Positions 11,719 through 52,978 of a stretch of 52,978 bases of DNA are shown here, one piece after another. The stretch spans positions 1 to 52,978 of the forward strand of contig LPNZ01009472.1 of NCBI GenBank assembly GCA_001655205.1, read 5' to 3'. Below the pieces are notes generated by a model. It made no database searches, was not told the DNA's origin, and worked only from the letters and a program-made list of their open reading frames with translations. The DNA comes from Lenisia limosa. Taxonomy: Eukaryota > Protista > Breviatea. Made by a program: the position numbers and the translations under genes. Each line of letters opens with the position of its first letter. Positions within the stretch are counted from its first letter, which is position 1.

Positions 11719-14700
11719 ATGAGCAGCCTATTATTAGCACAAAGCATTACGTCAGGAATCAGAACAGTTGGCAATGGGTGGTGATGTGATGATGATGTAT
11801 GTGATGATATGTCGTCATATACAAGCTTGGCATATTTTGCTCAGACTGTTCATGCAACAACATTGTTTCAAGGATAAAATGTTCGCAATCCGAAATGTTC
11901 TGATAATAACCCCAACAGGCGTCCTTGGCGCGTCCATTTTCGACTTTGTTCAAATGGGACCTTCATCGCTACTTTGCTCTCAAGGATAGCTTGGTATGCT
12001 TTTTGCTACTCTGTTGCTTTTCTGTGTTTTAGAACCATATTAACTCTATTGTTTTTATTTGTTCTGCTAAAATATATAATGGACTTATTGGCATAGGCAA
12101 AGCAATCCGACTTCATACAAATGCAAAAAAACGATCCTGATATGGCAACCAAGGTTGAAGAACTTCTCACTTTCGGTGAGTTTCCTGTTTCGTAAATCGG
12201 GTGCTCTGGAACAGTATTTGATGCATCATGTAACGGCATAGTGATGACTGATGACAAAGTCTCACCGAAAGAGCCGGTCCGCATTGCTATCACTGGTGGT
12301 GCAGGCCAGATCGGGTGGGNNNNNNNNNNNNNNNNNNNNNNNNNNNNNNNNNNNNNNNNNNNNNNNNNNNNNNNNNNNNNNNNNNNNNNNNNNNNNNNNN
12401 NNNNNNNNNNNNNNNNNNNNNNNNNNNNNNNNNNNNNNAATGGTCTGGACGGCTTGGACAGATAATACTCAACCTTTCGTTGTGTCTATTTCATTTCCCT
12501 TTTCCTTGATCTGCCAAGGTTGCCTAATTCAGCAGGTACGCTTTGGCATTCCGTGCAGCTGCTGGGGAAATGCTTGGAAGAGACCAAAGAGTCCACCTCA
12601 GTATACTGGTGTCGAATATAGTTGTAGAGGCATAATCTTTACCAAACTCTTTTGAGACAGGTTGAACGCTCAACATTATACCACAAATGTCTACAGATGG
12701 GATGGAATGGATGGCCTCTGTAACCTTTTTTCTTCACACTATATATCATATAGTATATAGTATATGTATAGAATCTATATAATATCATATATATATATGT
12801 GTGTGTGTGTGTGTATTAACAATTTCTAGGTTTAATTGAGAGGGAAGAAGCCATTCCAGCGCTCAAAGGCGTTGCTATGGAACTTGCCGACTGTTTGGGG
12901 GAGGGGGACAGCGTTCTAGTAAAAAAAGACATTCTTGCAGTATGTTTGATGGATTATTTTTTATCACCCAGGTGCGTTCCCCCTTCTATCTGACGTCACT
13001 ATCACATCTAATGCCGAAGAAGGATTTGATGGAGCAAAGGTGGGAAGCGAATGTCCGAATTGAGGTTGGACATCTGAGTCTGAATAATGACTCAAACATA
13101 ATCTAAGGTAGAAGAACCAATTGTTTTTCATTTGGAGCAAGATATTAACGCATTCTATCTCAAACGCAGTGATACCTCCAGTGGAATACCCCGTAAAGAT
13201 TTGAGTTTAGAATATTCAAACAGGATGTACAATGAATGAGATAAAGAGTCAATGAATATTAGCTAGTTATAGAAGTGAAAATATGCGCGGTGTAATTATT
13301 GCTAACATTCTCCAGGCAGCTCTGTTGGTAGGGTCCAGTCCCCGCGCTGCTGGAATGGAGAGAGCGGATCTTCTTAGGAAGAACGCTGAGATCTTTGTTC
13401 ACCAAGGAAAGGTTGGTCTGTGGATTTTGGTGTGTGGCATTTCATTGTATTTTTTTTTGGTAACAATTAAAAATAGAGCTTCATTCTTATATGAGAGTTT
13501 TCCGAAATTCTCGATATAATCGGTTTGTTTCATGTCTTTTGGGGGAAAGGAAAGCTAGAGCTCTAGGTTAAAGACTGAAAAAGTTTGCACAGAAATACTG
13601 TTTCATCGGATTGAAAGGTATTAAGCATATCATAGCTAGTTTCTTACTTTCTTTTTTAATGATCCCAAAGGCTCTGAACAAGTTTGCTGATGACAGCTGT
13701 AAAGTGGTGGTGGTAGGAAACCCAGCCAATACAAATGCTCTCATTACTGCTCACCATGCTCCCAAACTTGAGGTAATGACAAAGTGGATCTCAATAGTTC
13801 TTATGATTTACAGGACAACATCTCGGCTCTTATGCTCCTTGATCACAACCGATCCTTGTCAATGCTTGCTGATAAGGTTTGTTTGTTGGGGATATGCAGC
13901 TGATAATGTAGCTTAAAACAACCACTTCTGCCTTTGATCGTTTTGTTGTCTGGGGTAATCACAGCCCAACAATGGTTCCCGATGTATCGTATTGCTCTGT
14001 CAACAACGGCCAAATGGTATGTAAGGGCTTGCATGTTAGCCACTATTTTATTATATTAATCAAAACAGGTAACCGACCTCGTTGATGAGACGTGGGTTTC
14101 AGAAGTATTCAGACCTTTGGTACAGGTAGGGCTCGTATTATCTTCTTCGTACTTGAATCAATATCATAGTTACTATCTCATAGTATTCGACTTTAAATTC
14201 TCTTTGATTGTCAAATGGTTGATTACCTTCTTTCCTTGATTTGTATAGCAAAGAGGGTCTGCGATTATTGCGGCCCGCAATGCTTCAAGTGCTGCATCAG
14301 CTGCGAATGGTTTGTTAGAAGCTTGCGCTTGGATCTGTTTTTATGTTATTAATCCTTGTAAATCTCAAGCATATGGAAATACAAGTGCATATCCCCTTCT
14401 TTTGATACCTCTAGCGACTTTGGCCCATATGAAATCCTGGATGTCGGACAGTGACGGACAATGGATTAGCATGGCTAGAATGTACGTTGGGAGGCTGAAA
14501 CCCCTGAACAAACATAGCAGACCTCTGTACAATTATATTTTGAAATAATTCGTAATTAATTATATTTAATTGCAAGGTACAATTATTCCGGGTGAAATAA
14601 TCTCGAAATTATTTACGAATAAATTTGTATATTGCTAATTACATATCATATCATAAACTATTATACAAATTAGTGTACCATATACAATATCATATACTAT

Positions 14701-20780: not shown

Positions 20781-21510
20781 TTAGTCCTTTTTGATCTCAA
20801 CACCGGTAGCACGGGCAACACGGCGCTCAGCCTGGCGAGCAACACGACGCTCACGGACAACACGAGCACGAGCACGGGCGGCGGCAGCCTGTTCGGCGAC
20901 CTTAGCCTCACGGATCTTGGAAGCCTTGGAGGAATGGATATGCTCGATGAGGACACGCTTGTTCTTGAAGGTGTTACCCTTAGCCTTCATGTAGAGCTCG
21001 TGGTAACTAATATGGTAAATAAACGTTTTAAAAATTTATTAAAAAAAAAACACCCCAAAGCTTACAGGTGACGGTCAATCTTGTTAGCCTCACGGTACTT
21101 GCGGAGAAGACGACGGAGAACACGCATGCGTCTCATCCAGATAACCTTCTCGGGCATACGAGCGTTGGCCTTACCCTTACGCTTACCGAAGCCCATGTGG
21201 CGACCCTTAGCCTTAGCAATGTTGCGACGGCGGATACGAGTACGGGAAACAGCGTTGTCGGGTTGACGAACAATGAGACCGGCGTTGATCTGCTCGCGGA
21301 TGGACTTGCCTGGAGTGTTACAAAATGAAAACAAAAAACCAGTCCCAAAACACAAAAAGGGAAGAAAGAACATTCTTAATAAAAAGTCCCAAGCATACGA
21401 GTGGTGGAGCCGCCAATGGTGTTGCATTCATTGGGGTCAAGCCAGACCTTACGCTTTCCACACTTGAGGATAGAGGCCGCGAGGCGCTTCTGAGTACGGA
21501 GGTTTCCCAT
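20781..21510 (-). CDS. RPL19: 60S ribosomal protein L19 (eL19), 3 exons
   Basis: [28 protein letters not shown]...[71 protein letters not shown]...; strong codon bias. Confidence 0.98.
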
Positions 21511-21734: not shown

Positions 21735-24131
21735 ATGACTGCTCCATTGACAATGGTGGAAGACAGAAATAACTGTCAAAATGTAGAGGAGACTGAAAGA
21801 AGTCTCCAAGAAACTTCTTGTTTCCAAGGAGAGAAATGCTGTAGTGGTGCTGAGAAGAAAGGTTTGTGTAGGGTTCTTAGAGAGTTGGCTCTAAGAGTCG
21901 TATATCTTCAAGCGATTTCCTAGGTTGTCTTTTTTATTACTTTGTTTAAGAAAGAGGTGGGATGGGGCAGCAACAGATGTGCTACAAATGTTTTCTTCTA
22001 GATTGAGAAAATAATTTACCTTGCTTGTATAATACTGGCAAACATATGTTCGTACTCTGATGTGTAAAATACGTTCGTACTCTGATGTCAGAGGCCTAAA
22101 AGGTCGTTGATTAACAGTTGACAGATTCGTGTTGTAAGTCTGCTGAAAAGAAGGAAGATTCATGTTGTAAGTCTGCTGAAAAGAAGGAAGATTCATGTTG
22201 TAAGTCTGCTGAAAAGAATGAAGATTCGTGTTGTAAGTCTGCTGAAAAGAAGGAAGATTCGTGTTGTAAGTCTGCTGAAAAGAAAGAGTATCTTGAAACA
22301 GAAGCCGGTGGATGCTCCAAGGGTTGCTGCTCACAAACGGTTTGAAAGTCTCTTTTTGGGTTCTGACATAATGGTAGATAGATGAAATCCCGATTGTTGT
22401 GAAAGAGCCTGGGCAATACATCAATACCAACTGTGTTCTTGACAAACCCCGTTATGGCGTATTCTGCTGTCTTGGTAGGTAGACTAAGCTGAACACTCAC
22501 CACTAGGTGCTACCATCCCTTGTGGTGAAGCTGGCTGCCACGGTCTTGAACTTGCCTGTGATGGATGTTGTGGAAATTGCATGTTTTCAGGTCCTAATTT
22601 TGTCGAAGCTTCTGTTCACAAAGCCAACCAACGTATGTTACCTCCAAATACTTTTTTTTCTTGTTCTTTTTTTTTTTCTTACCTTGAAGAGCGCCAAAAG
22701 TACATTAAGGTTGCAGTGTGGCTCTCATTTTTCACAATCTTTTACAATGTGGTATGTTAGTTACCTTGCTTGGATGACTTTCATAAGGATGTTGAGTATT
22801 TTTTAAGGTCCCTTTGTTAACACTTGAAGATCGAAGGAGCAGTCGCAGTATTCTTCGGAGTGTCAGAGGAGTCGCTTTCCCTCCTTGGTTTTGGCCTGGA
22901 TAGGTGAATGGGATTGCCAGGTTGTTTGAAGTGAGATTTTCCACTTATTCTTTCAGTTTTGTTGAAGTTGCGTCAGCTTGTTTGTCCTATTGGAGGCTTA
23001 AGGCCGAAAATGGTAGGTTGTCACCCAATTTGATGCGGTTGCTGTAAAAATACTTTCCTTCTGAGATTTATTGGGTTATTTACTATTTTAGGCGGCAGTG
23101 AAGCCATTTCTCTTTCTCGTGAGAAGACAGCAACCAAATGGTAGGTTTCGGGTACTGTGTTTTAAAAATATGATATTTGAGCAATATGTTACTATATTTC
23201 AATCAATACCATTTGCTTTCACTCTGAAGGATTGGAGTTCTTCTAATTCTCCTGGGAACAATCACGCCTGTCGCTGGTTGGTCCACCATTCCCCCCCTAT
23301 GAATTTACTGTTTAGCTGTCATACAACTCTTTTTCGGAAACAGACCTGGTGAGTTTTTGATATTGCCCTGTTTCGGTCTAACTCTTCAGATACCACTTTG
23401 CCTGGGGTGCTAATTTCTTCTCTCTCGCTTTCATTCATGTTTATCCTCTGGTGGGTTATGGTTTCAGAGAACTCGTCCCATGATTACCTTTTCTTATATT
23501 TTAGGAGACTCAAGCAGAAATATGCCAACCTTTTGAATAGCAGTACTTTGTACATGGATTCGCAGTGCAGTCTTGGGTAAGAAGCATCCATTCTTCAAAA
23601 TAGAAGTTTCAATTTACATTGCTTTTTGAAATGCCAAAAGCCAGATGCCAAAGTCATTTTTTTTTTTTTATTAAAACTACTATTTTACTATGTCATAATT
23701 CATATCTTTTGGTATGTAGCTAAATGATGTTTGCACCTTCATGGCACTTAACAATCAGGTGCATTAAGTTGTCTTTTACGCTCTTTGTCGGGTCTTTGGT
23801 ATACCTTCTGTACTCCAAGATTTGGTTTGCAGACTCTGTTGCAGCCATCATCATCGGGCTCACTATTCTTAAAGAAGGTTTGCGTGAAGCAGTTGTGTAT
23901 TTTTATTTCTTTCAGAATAACACAATTCAATTTTTCCGTTTCTCACAATACTAAGTACCCAGGTATTGACACCATCAAATACGCTTCTGCTGAGGACTTC
24001 ACTGGCGGATGCGGGTAAGTGTTCTTGGAAACAGGCGATGGCTTTTTGCTTTACTCAGCAGATGTTGTGGAGGCAAGCCAAAGACCACTACTGAACCACA
24101 ACTCAATGAGGCCATTGCACATCAAGTCTAA
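21735..24131 (+). CDS. Cation diffusion facilitator (TMEM163-like) metal transporter with a Cys-rich, metallothionein-like N-terminal domain (multi-exon)
   Basis: TM exons: RQKYIKVAVWLSFFTIFYNV/IEGAVAVFFGVSEESLSLLGFGLDS/FVEVASACLSYWRL, AVIQLFFGNRPDTTLPGVLISSLSLSFMFILW, RLKQKYANLLNSSTLYMDSQCSLGC, WFADSVAAIIIGLTILKEG. These follow the TMEM163/bacterial cation-efflux pattern. The last intron (gtaagt...cagcag) extends the C-terminus to GGCGCCGGKPK...HQV* at 24129-24131. Confidence 0.88.
22124..22288 (+). repeat. Coding tandem repeat, 5 x 33 bp (DSCCKSAEKKE)
   Basis: Unit gattcgtgttgtaagtctgctgaaaagaaggaa, five contiguous near-identical copies in frame in exon 2 of the CDF gene. Confidence 0.97.
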
Positions 24132-24267: not shown

Positions 24268-25883
24268 TTAGAAAGCGCCATCAACATCCTCTTCGTATCT
24301 AAAACATCAGCATGGGAGTGAGATTAGTACATTCGATCAATGGAAAAACAAGCCAAATCCTCACCTGGGGTTGCGCTCGAGATGCTTTGCTCTGCGCTCG
24401 ACCTGGCCCATTCTGTTAGTGACCTTCTTGCCACGTCGGCGGCGGATGGCGGCACGGACCTGAGCAAATTATAGACATCCTGTTCCGCCAAGTACTTTAT
24501 ATAGTAACCCCAATACTACTAAACCGATTAATAAGAGTCACTATCTAGAGTAGGTAGCGTTTGAAACAAAATCCCACCAAACTCCCAAGAATATTTCCAC
24601 AAGATCCCTAATTACCTCATTGGGGGAGATGTAAGAGTCATTTTCGTAAAGAGTGCGGCCACCTAAAACGTAAACACCAAAGAATAAGAACACAGCAAAT
24701 GTTAATAATATATGGGAGATGACAATAAGACCAACGGGGAATGAGCTTACCAAAAGATCCCTCGAAAACTCTGAGGGGGTTGAGGACAAAACGAGGGCCA
24801 ATCTCAAGGAGTTCGTGGCTCTCTGCATTGTTCTTATGTTGGTCATGTTCAGCTACAGTGTTAGAAAACGAATGCCTTGTAGTTCTTGAGGATCCTGCCC
24901 CCCCCCCACTATTGACTTTAATTTGATAGTGACGGACCCAAACGCGGCCGCCGATAAGGAAGAATGACAAAACGTGGTCGATGAAGGGCTTGGAGNNNNN
25001 NNNNNNNNNNNNNNNNNNNNNNNNNNNNNNNNNNNNNNNNNNNNNNNNNNNNNNNNNNNNNNNNNNNNNNNNNNNNNNNNNNNTGTGAATCATGATAAAT
25101 CACGTGACGTTCCCTGTAAGAAAAAAAAAAAAAAATGTAGGGAAAACAGACAAATATAGTGTTTCTTATACAATAATACTACAGTTTTCCCTTGGATTCC
25201 GACCTGAGCCAGGAGCTCCTTGAGGACCTGGTGGCAAGGCTCATCGTCAAAGCCCTTGTCAAAGACCAGCAGCGGCCGACTTCCCTTCAGACAGTTGCCC
25301 GTCAGACGAAGGTCATCAAGTGTGTGTACTGGAATAGTTACAAGGTGATGAGAGGCAAACAAAGACATGAATGAACATTAGCCATGCTTACAGCTTTGAA
25401 CGAGCATTTTTGCAGAGGGTCCTTCAGGGGCATTGGAGCACCAAAGGTAAAGATCTTTCATCTTGCGGCCTTCAAGGAAGAGGCACTTGTTGCAATTCTT
25501 CATTTCACAAACCTGAAGAAAGTGAGCCAGGGACATAAAAAAAAAAGAGAATAAATCAAAATATAACACAAAGCTGAGGTAACAAAATGGTGAAGCTGAT
25601 AAAAGACCCACCTCGTTACAAACATCTGTTCTATCCTTGCAATCAAGTTTAGAATCCTTCTTGCTGTGTGGGAGCATGGCTGGGGGATAATAAAACAAAC
25701 AAACACAAGTGCAAAAAACATACATCTCAGATTATCCATCAAATCACGGTGATCGCTCTTGATTCCTCTCGATGAGAAGATAAGAACTCTTTCTTTGGGG
25801 GCCTTAGGCTTGGCTACGGGAGCAGGAGCAGCTTTTTTTGCCTCAGCAATGGCCTTTGCTCTCTTTCTAAGCTTCTTCACCAT
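24268..25883 (-). CDS. BRX1: Ribosome biogenesis protein BRX1 (Brix domain), multi-exon, crosses an N-gap
   Basis: KERVLIFSSRGIKSDHRDLMDNLR, PHSKKDSKLD, CEMKNCNKCLFLEGRKMKDLYLW, HTLDDLRLTGNCLKGSRPLLVFD, SKPFIDHVLSFFLIGGRVWVRHYQI, LLEIGPRFVLNPLRVFEGSFGGRTLYEN. End (YEEDVDGAF*) at 24268. Confidence 0.94.
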
Positions 25884-50467: not shown

Positions 50468-52978
50468 CTACTCCACCCATCCAAGAGACCGCGTGACAGC
50501 CTTGTGCCAACCCTCAGTGTCCTTTTTTCTTGACTCCGCGGATATGGTGTTACTGTAGCGCTTGACTGGCATGGAGTTGAGCACTGTCTTCAGCTCTGCG
50601 GAATAAGGTCAAGGGAATTGTCTAGCCATGCAATTAGTTGCCATCATAACAAAAGAGCGGGAGGGTGCATAGAAAACAGGCAGCAAAGCAATAAGGGGTC
50701 CCACCGGAAGTGTCTTTCCAGAAACCAACAGCAAGACCCGCAGCAAAGCCAGCGCCGAGAGCAGTCAACTCTGGCATGGCAGGACGGACTATAGCGTCAG
50801 TTGAATTGTGTGTGTGTGTGGGTGAATGTGATTGTAGTTGTGAAAGCCATTTCATTGCGTAAACAAAAAAAAAACATAAAGATGAGGTCAGATTTTTTGC
50901 TTGTTGTGAAACAAGGATCAAAAATACAATCTGATAAAACATAATACCGGAGTGCCAAGGCGCTCACCCAAATCAATACCCAGGAGGTCAGCTTGTCTTT
51001 GCATCAGAATCTCGTTCCTAGTCATGCCACCTTTATAGTCATGAACACAGGGACATACTTAGCATTTCTTGATTATTGTTATGGCGGCATACCGTCAACT
51101 TGAAGGAAGTTCAGAGACCTATCAATGTCCTTTTCCATTGCATCCAGCACCTAGGAATGTGTCACTGGTTTCAGCAGCAAAAGTGGAAATCTCAGAGAAG
51201 GAATGAACAAATAGAAAATGATCAAACCTCCTTGGTTTGGAAGCAAGTTGATTCGAGTACAGCTCTTGCAATGTGACCCTTGTTGGAGAATTGGGTCAAG
51301 CCACAGAACACACTGAACAATGTCACAAAGATATTGGCAACGAAGCCCACCTCCTCTTATGTGAAAACAAACAACCATTAGCACCATCCCCCCACCNNNN
51401 NNNNNNNNNNNNNNNNNNNNNNNNNNNNNNNNNNNNNNNNNNNNNNNNNNNNNNNNNNNNNNNNNNNNNNNNNNNNNNNNNNNNNNNNNNNNNNNNNNNN
51501 NNNNNNNNNNNNNNNNNNNNNNNNNNNNNNNNNNNNNNNNNNNNNNNNNNNNNNNNNNNNNNNNNNNNNNNNNNNNNNNNNNNNNNNNNNNNNNNNNNNN
51601 NNNNNNNNNNNNNNNNNNNNNNNNNNNNNNNNNNNNNNNNNNNACGCCTGCACCAGCAATGGCAACGCTTCCCTGGAGGGTCACTCTTGAGGCTCAAATC
51701 ACAAGCTGCAGCAGGTTTAACGCTTTTTTTTACTAGAGATCAAGCTGGCTAAGAGCAGATTGATACTACTCAGTAAGAATTGTCAAGGCAGGGGGGAGGG
51801 GGGGGGGGGGCTGATATATCNNNNNNNNNNNNNNNNNNNNNNNNNNNNNNNNNNNNNNNNNNNNNNNNNNNNNNNNNNNNNNNNNNNNNNNNNNNNNNNN
51901 NNNNNNNNNNNNNNNNNNNNNNNNNNNNNNNNNNNNNNNNNNNNNNNNNNNNNNNNNNNNNNNNNNNNNNNNNNNNGCAACTGTTGTGAGGAGACCCGCG
52001 TTGGACGTGATTGGAGTGTTGCCACTGTTGACCAACATGAAACAGCCGGTTCCGTAGCTGAGGGGTTATGATCTGAGGAGGGGCAAAATCAACCTGCACA
52101 ACAAGCTGCTGGCATCAATGTCATACGTGTTTTTGGCGTCGCCTGGGCTGAGACACGCCTGGCCAAGGAGGGCGGCCTGCTGGTCACCGACACACTAAAG
52201 AGTAAACATCCTGTGTAATGTATATAGTTTATGATATCATATCATATGCATTGTGTATTATAGTATAAGTGACTTTATGTACACGTACATATGTATGTTA
52301 TAGATCAGCACCAGAAAGGTGAAAATATAACAGCTGTTAAAAAGCACAGTTTAATCTATCAAAAAAAAAAAAACATAACAGTATCTATTAGAGCAGCTGT
52401 ACCATCTAGTGTGTCTATTTTATTTTTTGACTCCTCCCCCACGCCAGCGATAGGAAGGCCCTTGAGGTTGTTGGAAGTAACCTCACCGTACACCTGATGA
52501 TTAGAATCGCAATACAAGGGCTTGTCAACTCCACGTGGGAATAATCAAATGATATGCATATGATATGTATATATTACATTAAAAAGTACGATCTTATATG
52601 TGTGAGAGAGCATGACCATATCCCCCACTTCGGATGAGGATTTGATTTCAGGCAACTGGACTGACTCGGGAATACCAATCATCCTGGTAAGTGAGAAACA
52701 AATACAAAATAATTGGAAAGAGATATGGTAGTGGAGACTTGAAAACAATATTGAATCGGCGCCACGAGCAACCCACTCCTTGAGTTCCTTTGACCATTGG
52801 CATGTTTTGAGGTCCATCAGAGCGTAGCGCGAGGCGTTGGAGACGTCCGTCACAAACTTGCCCCCGTTGACACTGCCGGTGAGGTTCTAGACTGTGATAA
52901 GGGGAGAAGCGTGCTTCATTTTGGATAGAAAATCTAGCAAGATATTCATTCAGTATTGGTAACAGAAGTGAAGCCCAA
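50468..52978 (-). CDS. GK: Glycerol kinase (FGGY family); the 5' part lies beyond the window and several exons fall in N-gaps
   Basis: [146 protein letters not shown] (TAG at 50468). Confidence 0.96.

Follow-up and report, generated by a model that had tools for sequence, protein, structure and literature searches.

The question raised by this locus is whether a repetitive, Cys-rich coding region is joined to the membrane transporter that is encoded directly behind it, and what such a joint protein would do. The window, that is the whole stretch of DNA analysed, is the 52,978-nucleotide contig LPNZ01009472.1 of the breviate protist Lenisia limosa, and the gene in question lies at 21735-24131 on its + strand. 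An earlier interpretation of the same DNA (hereafter the sequence-only reading) had proposed here a new fusion architecture, in which a metallothionein-like array of Cys pairs is attached to a compact cation diffusion facilitator (CDF) transporter. We consider it moderately probable that one gene encodes a six-helix CDF protein without cytoplasmic C-terminal domain, extended at its N-terminus by a Cys array, and that this protein would capture metal by its thiolates and export it. That the N-terminal extension, array included, is part of the transporter is judged quite probable from the sequence features and the comparison with homologues given below.

Three forward frames were read, and the resulting gene model extends from ATG 21735 to TAA 24129-24131 (+) in 15 exons, with every intron of the GT-AG type and with 1230 nt encoding 409 residues. 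ATG 21735 is the first in-frame ATG and an in-frame TAA stands two codons 5' of it. The model holds 32 Cys, of which three are in the transmembrane (TM) core, three in the C-terminal tail and 26 before the first transmembrane helix (TM1), in agreement with the approximately 26 of the sequence-only reading. The exons and motifs of the transporter core are the following.

22690-22751, 22830-22903, 22957-23012, 23092-23140 and 23230-23276, + strand: exons 5-9, part of the six-helix CDF core.
23316-23348, 23390-23450, 23505-23576, 23759-23877 and 23963-24014, + strand: exons 10-14, the rest of the core.
22899-22966, + strand: TM2 site, D223 (22899-22901) and E227 (22964-22966), with intron 6 between them.
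23557-23762, + strand: TM5 site, D324 (23557-23559), C327 (23566-23568) and C331 (23760-23762), with intron 12 between the two Cys.
24004-24068, + strand: C-terminal GGCGCC, with intron 14 inside it; this is the F-x-G-G-C-G-C motif of the family, directly after TM6.
24062-24131, + strand: exon 15, with ...CCGGKPKTTTEPQLNEAIAHQV as its tail and TAA as stop, without cytoplasmic C-terminal domain.

Searches with the window gene used its exons singly; the joined model served for local alignment to the proteins retrieved. When metagenome contigs were scanned with the 76-residue open frame around exon 13 as query, two loci were obtained: L001, a bacterial contig with an open reading frame (ORF) of 236 residues which is colinear with the whole core of the window gene, and L002, a short AT-rich contig. 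The L001 ORF matched PF01545 (Cation_efflux) with 39.5 bits against a cut-off of 26.6; it scored 39.9 with TIGR01297, below the cut-off of 82.35, and gave no PF16916 match. The bacterial comparison set consists of the best 120 of 293 relatives found by a word search with this ORF (P0001-P0120), each of them 193-242 residues long and carrying PF01545, with the source names "cation transporter" or "heavy metal transporter" and with origins in Bdellovibrionota, Elusimicrobiota and other groups. The fold was compared on L001 as a stand-in for the joined window protein: its AlphaFold (AF2) model, with a predicted local distance difference test score (pLDDT) of 85.8, matched the transmembrane domains of YiiP, ZnT7, ZnT1, ZnT3, ZnT8 and SLC30A10; the 14 best matches had TM-scores between 0.54 and 0.69 and E-values between 1.9e-6 and 1e-3.

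The window model has six hydrophobic segments, and seven of its exons could be placed by hhalign on a profile of the bacterial family (A2) with probabilities of 77-98.7%: exon 5 on columns 15-34, exon 6 on 35-58, exon 7 on 60-77, exon 11 on 122-140, exon 12 on 142-164, exon 13 on 166-204 and exon 14 on 207-221, where the gaps of 1-2 columns between adjoining exons correspond to codons divided by introns. When bacterial proteins were compared with the window by tblastn, the core exons were matched in order and no second transporter copy was detected in the window. By a local script the joined model gave gapless alignments of about 210 residues with 120/120 of the bacterial relatives, at 48-55% identity and with E-values that reached about 1e-68 to 1e-74 in the best cases. 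Because the profile columns and the tblastn matches are ordered and the alignment is gapless, the exon structure of the core (exons 5-14) is secure. The single exons were less informative: none of the nine searched against Pfam gave a match, being too short, and exon 13 alone had no match in a library of 1.84 billion proteins or among the PDB sequences and gave a weak PF01545 (Cation_efflux) lead (0.82) in the Atlas. Profile A2 found no CDF match among the PDB sequences, and hhalign gave no informative alignment with ZitB. About 40 residues follow TM6 in the window model, and the bacterial relatives stop 0-16 residues past GGCGC. On these alignments the window gene is a member of the CDF superfamily, in the class without cytoplasmic C-terminal domain, as the sequence-only reading had proposed for its compact transporter.

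The gene neighbourhoods of two bacterial relatives were inspected as well and gave no metal-related clue. At L003:581-5696, and likewise in L004, the CDF gene is the last of eight same-strand genes (seven without Pfam match, one DUF3703), and behind this run in L003 stand IS21, rve and Transposase_mut genes, so that a mobile island is possible.

Within the core the putative metal ligands are strictly kept. The D-x3-E of TM2 (GLDSFVE), already recognised by the sequence-only reading, corresponds to D223 and E227 in the family motif GFGxDSxIE and is invariant in 120/120 bacterial relatives. Its partner in TM5, a C-x3-C, had been missed there: D324, C327 and C331 (D-A-x-C-S-L-A-C-I-K-L-S) are likewise invariant in 120/120. 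In an hhalign comparison with E. coli FieF (single-sequence template, probability only 10%) D-S-L-I-E was paired with D45-S-L-V-D49, and in this same weak alignment the first Cys of TM5 (C327) fell on H153, with a gap before the second Cys. The predicted transport site would probably consist of D223/E227 (TM2) and C327/C331 (TM5). Such a quartet of D,E and C,C would be a thiolate variant that departs from the canonical ligands D/H-x3-D and H-x3-D. A two-Cys transport site is not among the site types treated in the CDF reviews consulted, and no paper on this CDF subfamily or its cysteine site was found in the literature. The C-terminal GCGCC(G), which the sequence-only reading took for an addition to the transporter, proved instead to be a family motif: shortly after TM6 the bacterial relatives carry F-x-G-G-C-G-C, and its two Cys are kept in 116/120 and 117/120 of them.

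The N-terminal side has no such counterpart in bacteria. In the bacterial relatives TM1 is preceded by about 5-38 residues, and these contain two or more Cys in just 1/120. As these tails are short and Cys-poor, the extension of about 175 residues in the window gene is a eukaryotic addition. Its features are given here in the order of the gene.

21735-21861, + strand: exon 1, residues 1-43, ending with the degenerate unit EKCCSGAEKK and a phase-1 donor GTTTGT.
22125-22339, + strand: exon 2, residues 43-114, with five DSCCKSAEKKE units and then YLETEAGGCSKGCCSQT.
22125-22288, + strand: tandem array of five 33-bp units, the first D codon being divided by intron 1.
22313-22330, + strand: CSKGCC motif in exon 2, a hexapeptide common to the N-terminal extensions of the homologues L011 and L015.
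22408-22474, + strand: putative exon 3, PGQYINTNCVLDKPRYGVFCCL, with a weak purine-rich acceptor and a next intron of 32 nt; of all exons the one held with least certainty.
22507-22632, + strand: exon 4, in which the Cys cluster ATIPCGEAGCHGLELACDGCCGNC and the pre-TM1 segment MFSGPNFVEASVHKANQ share one frame.

The motifs listed by the sequence-only reading, namely the five units, the degenerate sixth copy at the end of exon 1, GGCSKGCC, FCC and PCGEAGCHGLELACDGCCGNC, were all recovered in the model, where GLDSFVE and GGCGCCGG could be located as well. Tandem Repeats Finder reported a 33-bp unit in 4.9 copies at 22123-22284 with 96% matches and no indels. In frame the array reads DSCCKSAEKKE five times, except that the third unit ends ...KNE (one K-to-N change). 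The units differ from one another at third codon positions alone, by four distinct changes of which three are synonymous; this fits a translated and recently duplicated array. By this pattern the array is a recent tandem expansion of the 33-bp unit, and the inference of recent growth, which the sequence-only reading had drawn from the near identity of the repeats, is borne out.

Several features connect the array with the transporter. The open frame of the array contains no ATG and connects in phase with exon 1, the source of both an ATG and the degenerate unit; the exon 4 Cys cluster likewise lacks an ATG, so an upstream exon is needed. The donors of introns 1 and 2 (GTTTGT and GTTTGA) resemble GTTTGC, the donor of the validated intron 13, and the splice phases fit throughout the model. 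The six Cys in the 24 codons directly upstream of the pre-TM1 segment, and in frame with it, have a binomial P of about 1e-4; comparable Cys-dense stretches are not rare in the six-frame space of the window (about 11 regions). The pattern CxxxCC, to which CSKGCC belongs, is found only 10 times in its 106,000 six-frame residues. From the agreement of frames and phases we infer that splicing joins exons 1-4 to the TM exons.

It was the second locus of the metagenome scan that led outside the bacteria. L002 has in-frame TAG and TAA at conserved positions and TGA as sole stop, a ciliate-type code. A word search with the first piece of L002, which reaches proteins of 50-159 residues so that full-length bacterial proteins fall outside it, returned ten further homologue fragments (P0121-P0130) besides those of L002 itself. 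Six of the ten consist of a single ORF running from a K/E-rich N-terminus straight into TM1-TM2, and in these N-termini CKKKCC, CKKACC, CKKGCC, CQKKCC or CSKGCC is found. Seven homologues (L002, L009 and L011-L015), several of them from TARA ocean metagenomes, are intronless and hold a Cys-bearing extension and the core in one ORF, four of which read to a stop (321-405 residues) and three of which are ended by the contig end. Their extensions are 45-160 residues long with 3-13 Cys and with one to three CxxxCC each, so that the window gene has the largest such extension seen. The TM2 and TM5 residues of the seven are those of the bacterial family, and the GxCGCC tail is present in 5/7, that is in all whose C-terminus is covered. 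In L009:4001-5023 (a TARA scaffold) the extension contains a tandem repeat of its own, QKTDDQNG three times between two CxxxCC motifs, and repeat expansion in the N-terminal region thus recurs independently.

In maximum-likelihood trees the window protein and the seven genes with TAA/TAG as sense codons stood on one side of a branch that separates them from the bacterial rows. This branch had a support of 97 by the Shimodaira-Hasegawa-like approximate likelihood ratio test (SH-aLRT) in a quick tree that included 60 bacterial rows, and of 94 by ultrafast bootstrap (UFBoot) and 93 by SH-aLRT in a careful tree with 40; the trees are unrooted, and their bacterial sample is the one nearest to L001, the remaining rows having been left out. 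The simplest reading of the alignments and trees is that a Cys-pair N-terminal extension is a trait common to the eukaryotic members. The new fusion architecture of the sequence-only reading therefore stands in one part, as a Cys-pair extension on a CDF core is real and recurs; it does not stand as a property of this gene alone, since seven one-ORF homologues share it, and its recurrence in marine ciliate-like organisms speaks for a trait of the lineage and against a single fusion event. The architecture appears to be undescribed so far, as no paper describing this combination of extension and core was found in the literature.

How could such a protein work? In CDFs such as YiiP and the ZnTs both termini are cytosolic, and the TM2/TM5 site carries metal out of the cytosol while protons are exchanged for it (PMC6465983, PMC10617992). 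In the mechanism that we propose, the cytosolic thiolates of the extension and of the GGCGC tail would capture a thiophilic metal, which would then pass by ligand exchange to the membrane site formed by TM2 and TM5 and be exported from the cytosol by proton antiport, as in other CDFs. The metal might be Zn2+ or Cd2+ most likely, and Cu+, Pb2+ or Hg2+ possibly. The CC array could serve as local buffer, sensor or donor, and its tandem duplication to 26 Cys might raise the local binding capacity or the sensing range. Metal binding, metal identity and transport direction are what we infer from motifs and homology.

Some observations speak against metal capture by the extension. In the Pfam search no Cys-rich exon, each taken alone among the nine, matched any family at E <= 10, and a word search with exon 2 found nothing similar among proteins of 39-124 residues; no member of the subfamily with a tested substrate was found in the literature. 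The label metallothionein-like, given by the sequence-only reading, was accordingly too loose: we found no metallothionein family model match, no Cys content near 30% in CxC/CC/CxxC, and no small stand-alone protein. Cys makes up 26 of the 180 residues before TM1 (14%) and 18% of the array, the Cys-rich region is most likely part of a 409-residue membrane protein, and its Cys pattern resembles CC-dipeptide tails more closely than metallothioneins.

The same missing family match suits the view that the gene is single and that its CC pairs are sites of S-acylation (palmitoylation), which would pin the transporter to a membrane or target it to a compartment. The polybasic setting of the motifs (CKKKCC, CQKKCC, DSCCKSAEKKE) is in line with this, as Lys-flanked CC pairs fit acylation. 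The homologues L011:1-1161 and L015:1859-3256 begin with MGSKQCC, which resembles what we take to be a signal of myristoyl-glycine and palmitoyl-cysteine, here on a metal transporter. Nevertheless, the core uses Cys at its transport site and bacteria, which are without such acylation, keep the cytosolic GGCGC tail; this conservation argues for a tie between the thiolates of the family and metal chemistry. Moreover, nine CC pairs, 26 Cys and CxxC-like clusters with His (PCGEAGCHG...CDGCCGNC) exceed the needs of targeting. Acylation in place of metal capture is rather unlikely in our opinion, although S-acylation and metal binding are not mutually exclusive.

The preferred reading, metal capture by an extension joined to the exporter, has also to be weighed against a division of the locus into two genes or isoforms. 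In this case exons 1-2 would give a two-exon, Cys-rich protein of 114 residues and a compact CDF would start at ATG 22454 or 22581, or else intron 2 retention or skipping of exons 2 and 3 would produce both from one promoter. The details of the N-terminal gene structure that count against a joined protein are found here. Introns 1-3 have acceptors that are weak beside those of introns 4-14, and intron 3 has only 32 nt. The donor of intron 2, GTTTGA, holds an in-frame TGA (22343-22345), which ends the 114-residue protein if the intron is unspliced. M162 (ATG 22581) stands exactly at the start position of the bacterial proteins and would open a protein of 248 residues, of bacterial size. When GT-AG chains were enumerated, exon 4 could be reached in a compatible frame by thousands of routes, some of them from ATGs downstream of the array (22312, 22371 and 22454), including a one-intron route from ATG 22454. 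An exhaustive enumeration of splice chains, scored by a position weight matrix from 11 introns, let no single N-terminal exon chain stand out. The intergenic spacers in the window are just about 200 bp.

Exons 2 and 3 together (282 nt) are phase-symmetric and the frame is kept if both are skipped; by such frame-neutral skipping, or by retention of intron 2 (114 residues), alternative products are possible. On the other hand, exon 4 carries its Cys cluster and the pre-TM1 segment in one frame, the cluster itself having no ATG, and the eukaryotic homologues hold extension and core in one unbroken ORF, including the CSKGCC that is placed in exon 2 here. No stand-alone protein similar to exon 2 was seen among proteins of 39-124 residues, and a 3' untranslated region, a promoter and a 5' untranslated region would all have to fit into a spacer of 108-240 bp. 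We therefore regard two genes or isoforms as unlikely. A third view, in which the Cys-rich domain is a redox or disulfide module that gates the transporter by oxidative state, has its sole support in the high density of cytosolic Cys and is highly improbable, because the cytosol is reducing, CC dipeptides and CxxxCC are typical of metal-thiolate clusters or acylation and not of CxxC switches, and the conserved Cys of TM5 occupy metal-ligand positions.

Coming back to thiolate capture and export by a single protein, a bolder version of it is doubtful. It supposes an all-thiolate route, from the N-terminal CC array over the C-terminal GGCGC to the C-x3-C of TM5, in a eukaryotic CDF branch that would handle a non-classical substrate, e.g. 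Cu(I), Hg(II) or Pb(II), or would be strictly selective for Cd, and in which the copy number of the 33-bp unit tunes tolerance. If the preferred reading of thiolate capture and export holds, the subfamily would widen the known ligand chemistry of CDFs and would be a case from nature in which a chelating array is coupled directly to an exporter, and the repeat copy number would be a simple genetic handle on metal tolerance in protists.

Some further features surround the gene or overlap it. A ribosomal protein L19 gene at 21062-21510 (-) is divergent from it, with the start codons about 225 bp apart, and the spacer between them is probably a shared bidirectional promoter region; no motifs resembling metal response elements were found near the promoter. 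An antisense open frame of 184 residues at 21891-22445 (-) spans the repeat array and is most likely a by-product of a repeat that keeps all frames open, not a gene. A scan for Cys codons revealed a short Cys-rich open frame also at 14224-14340 (+), and runs of N (assembly gaps) break open frames at 24638-25093 and 51151-51752.

Among known systems, CDF proteins without C-terminal domain are noted as a class, with a function called unclear, in the passage devoted to them in one review (PMC6465983, citing Kolaj-Robin 2015); they are numerous and without assigned function. The bacterial members share with the window gene the invariant D-x3-E and D-x2-C-x3-C, the GGCGC and a six-helix core (48-55% identical). 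They differ from it by their size (193-242 residues) and by N-terminal tails of 38 residues at most that are almost free of Cys, whereas the window gene has 14 introns and the Cys-rich extension of about 175 residues.

Animal TMEM163 (proposed SLC30A11) exports zinc and resembles the CDFs, with six helices, an N-terminal region in the cytosol and a short C-terminus, and the acidic TM2 pair D123/D127 (D-x3-D) of rodent Tmem163 is needed for zinc efflux (10.1101/692525, PMC7926707). The pair D223/E227 of the window protein is similar, but such a pair is common to many CDFs and thus not discriminating. No cluster among the nearest in the Atlas bears the name TMEM163, and the TMEM163-type label of the sequence-only reading, with the likeness in six helices, short C-terminus and acidic TM2 pair, is a lead only. 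To our knowledge, human TMEM163 is without the C-x3-C of TM5 and without the GGCGC tail.

The plant Zn/Cd exporters HMA2 and HMA4, which are P1B-ATPases, carry a charged, cytosolic C-terminal tail rich in CC dipeptides that is thought to bind and sense metal. They belong to an unrelated transporter class, have the tail at the opposite terminus and show no sequence homology, therefore the parallel is one of analogy only. A metal-ligand role is also ascribed to the His-rich loops of ZnT/MTP1 (PMC6465983). These loops and the metallothioneins, including the Cd-metallothioneins of ciliates, are comparable as disordered cytosolic ligand arrays, often tandem-expanded, on or beside exporters; the window protein differs from the former by using Cys pairs instead of His, and from the latter, with their approximately 30% Cys, by the 14-18% of its extension and by the missing metallothionein Pfam match.

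Counterparts with the N-terminal extension are the uncharacterised homologues, from marine and other metagenomes, that use TAA/TAG as sense codons. They are intronless, have a variant code and 3-13 Cys in the extension and lack a near-identical tandem array. With the window gene they have in common the core, at about 43-45% identity, the GxCGCC tail and a K/E-rich extension with CxxxCC, in which even the hexapeptide CSKGCC is identical.

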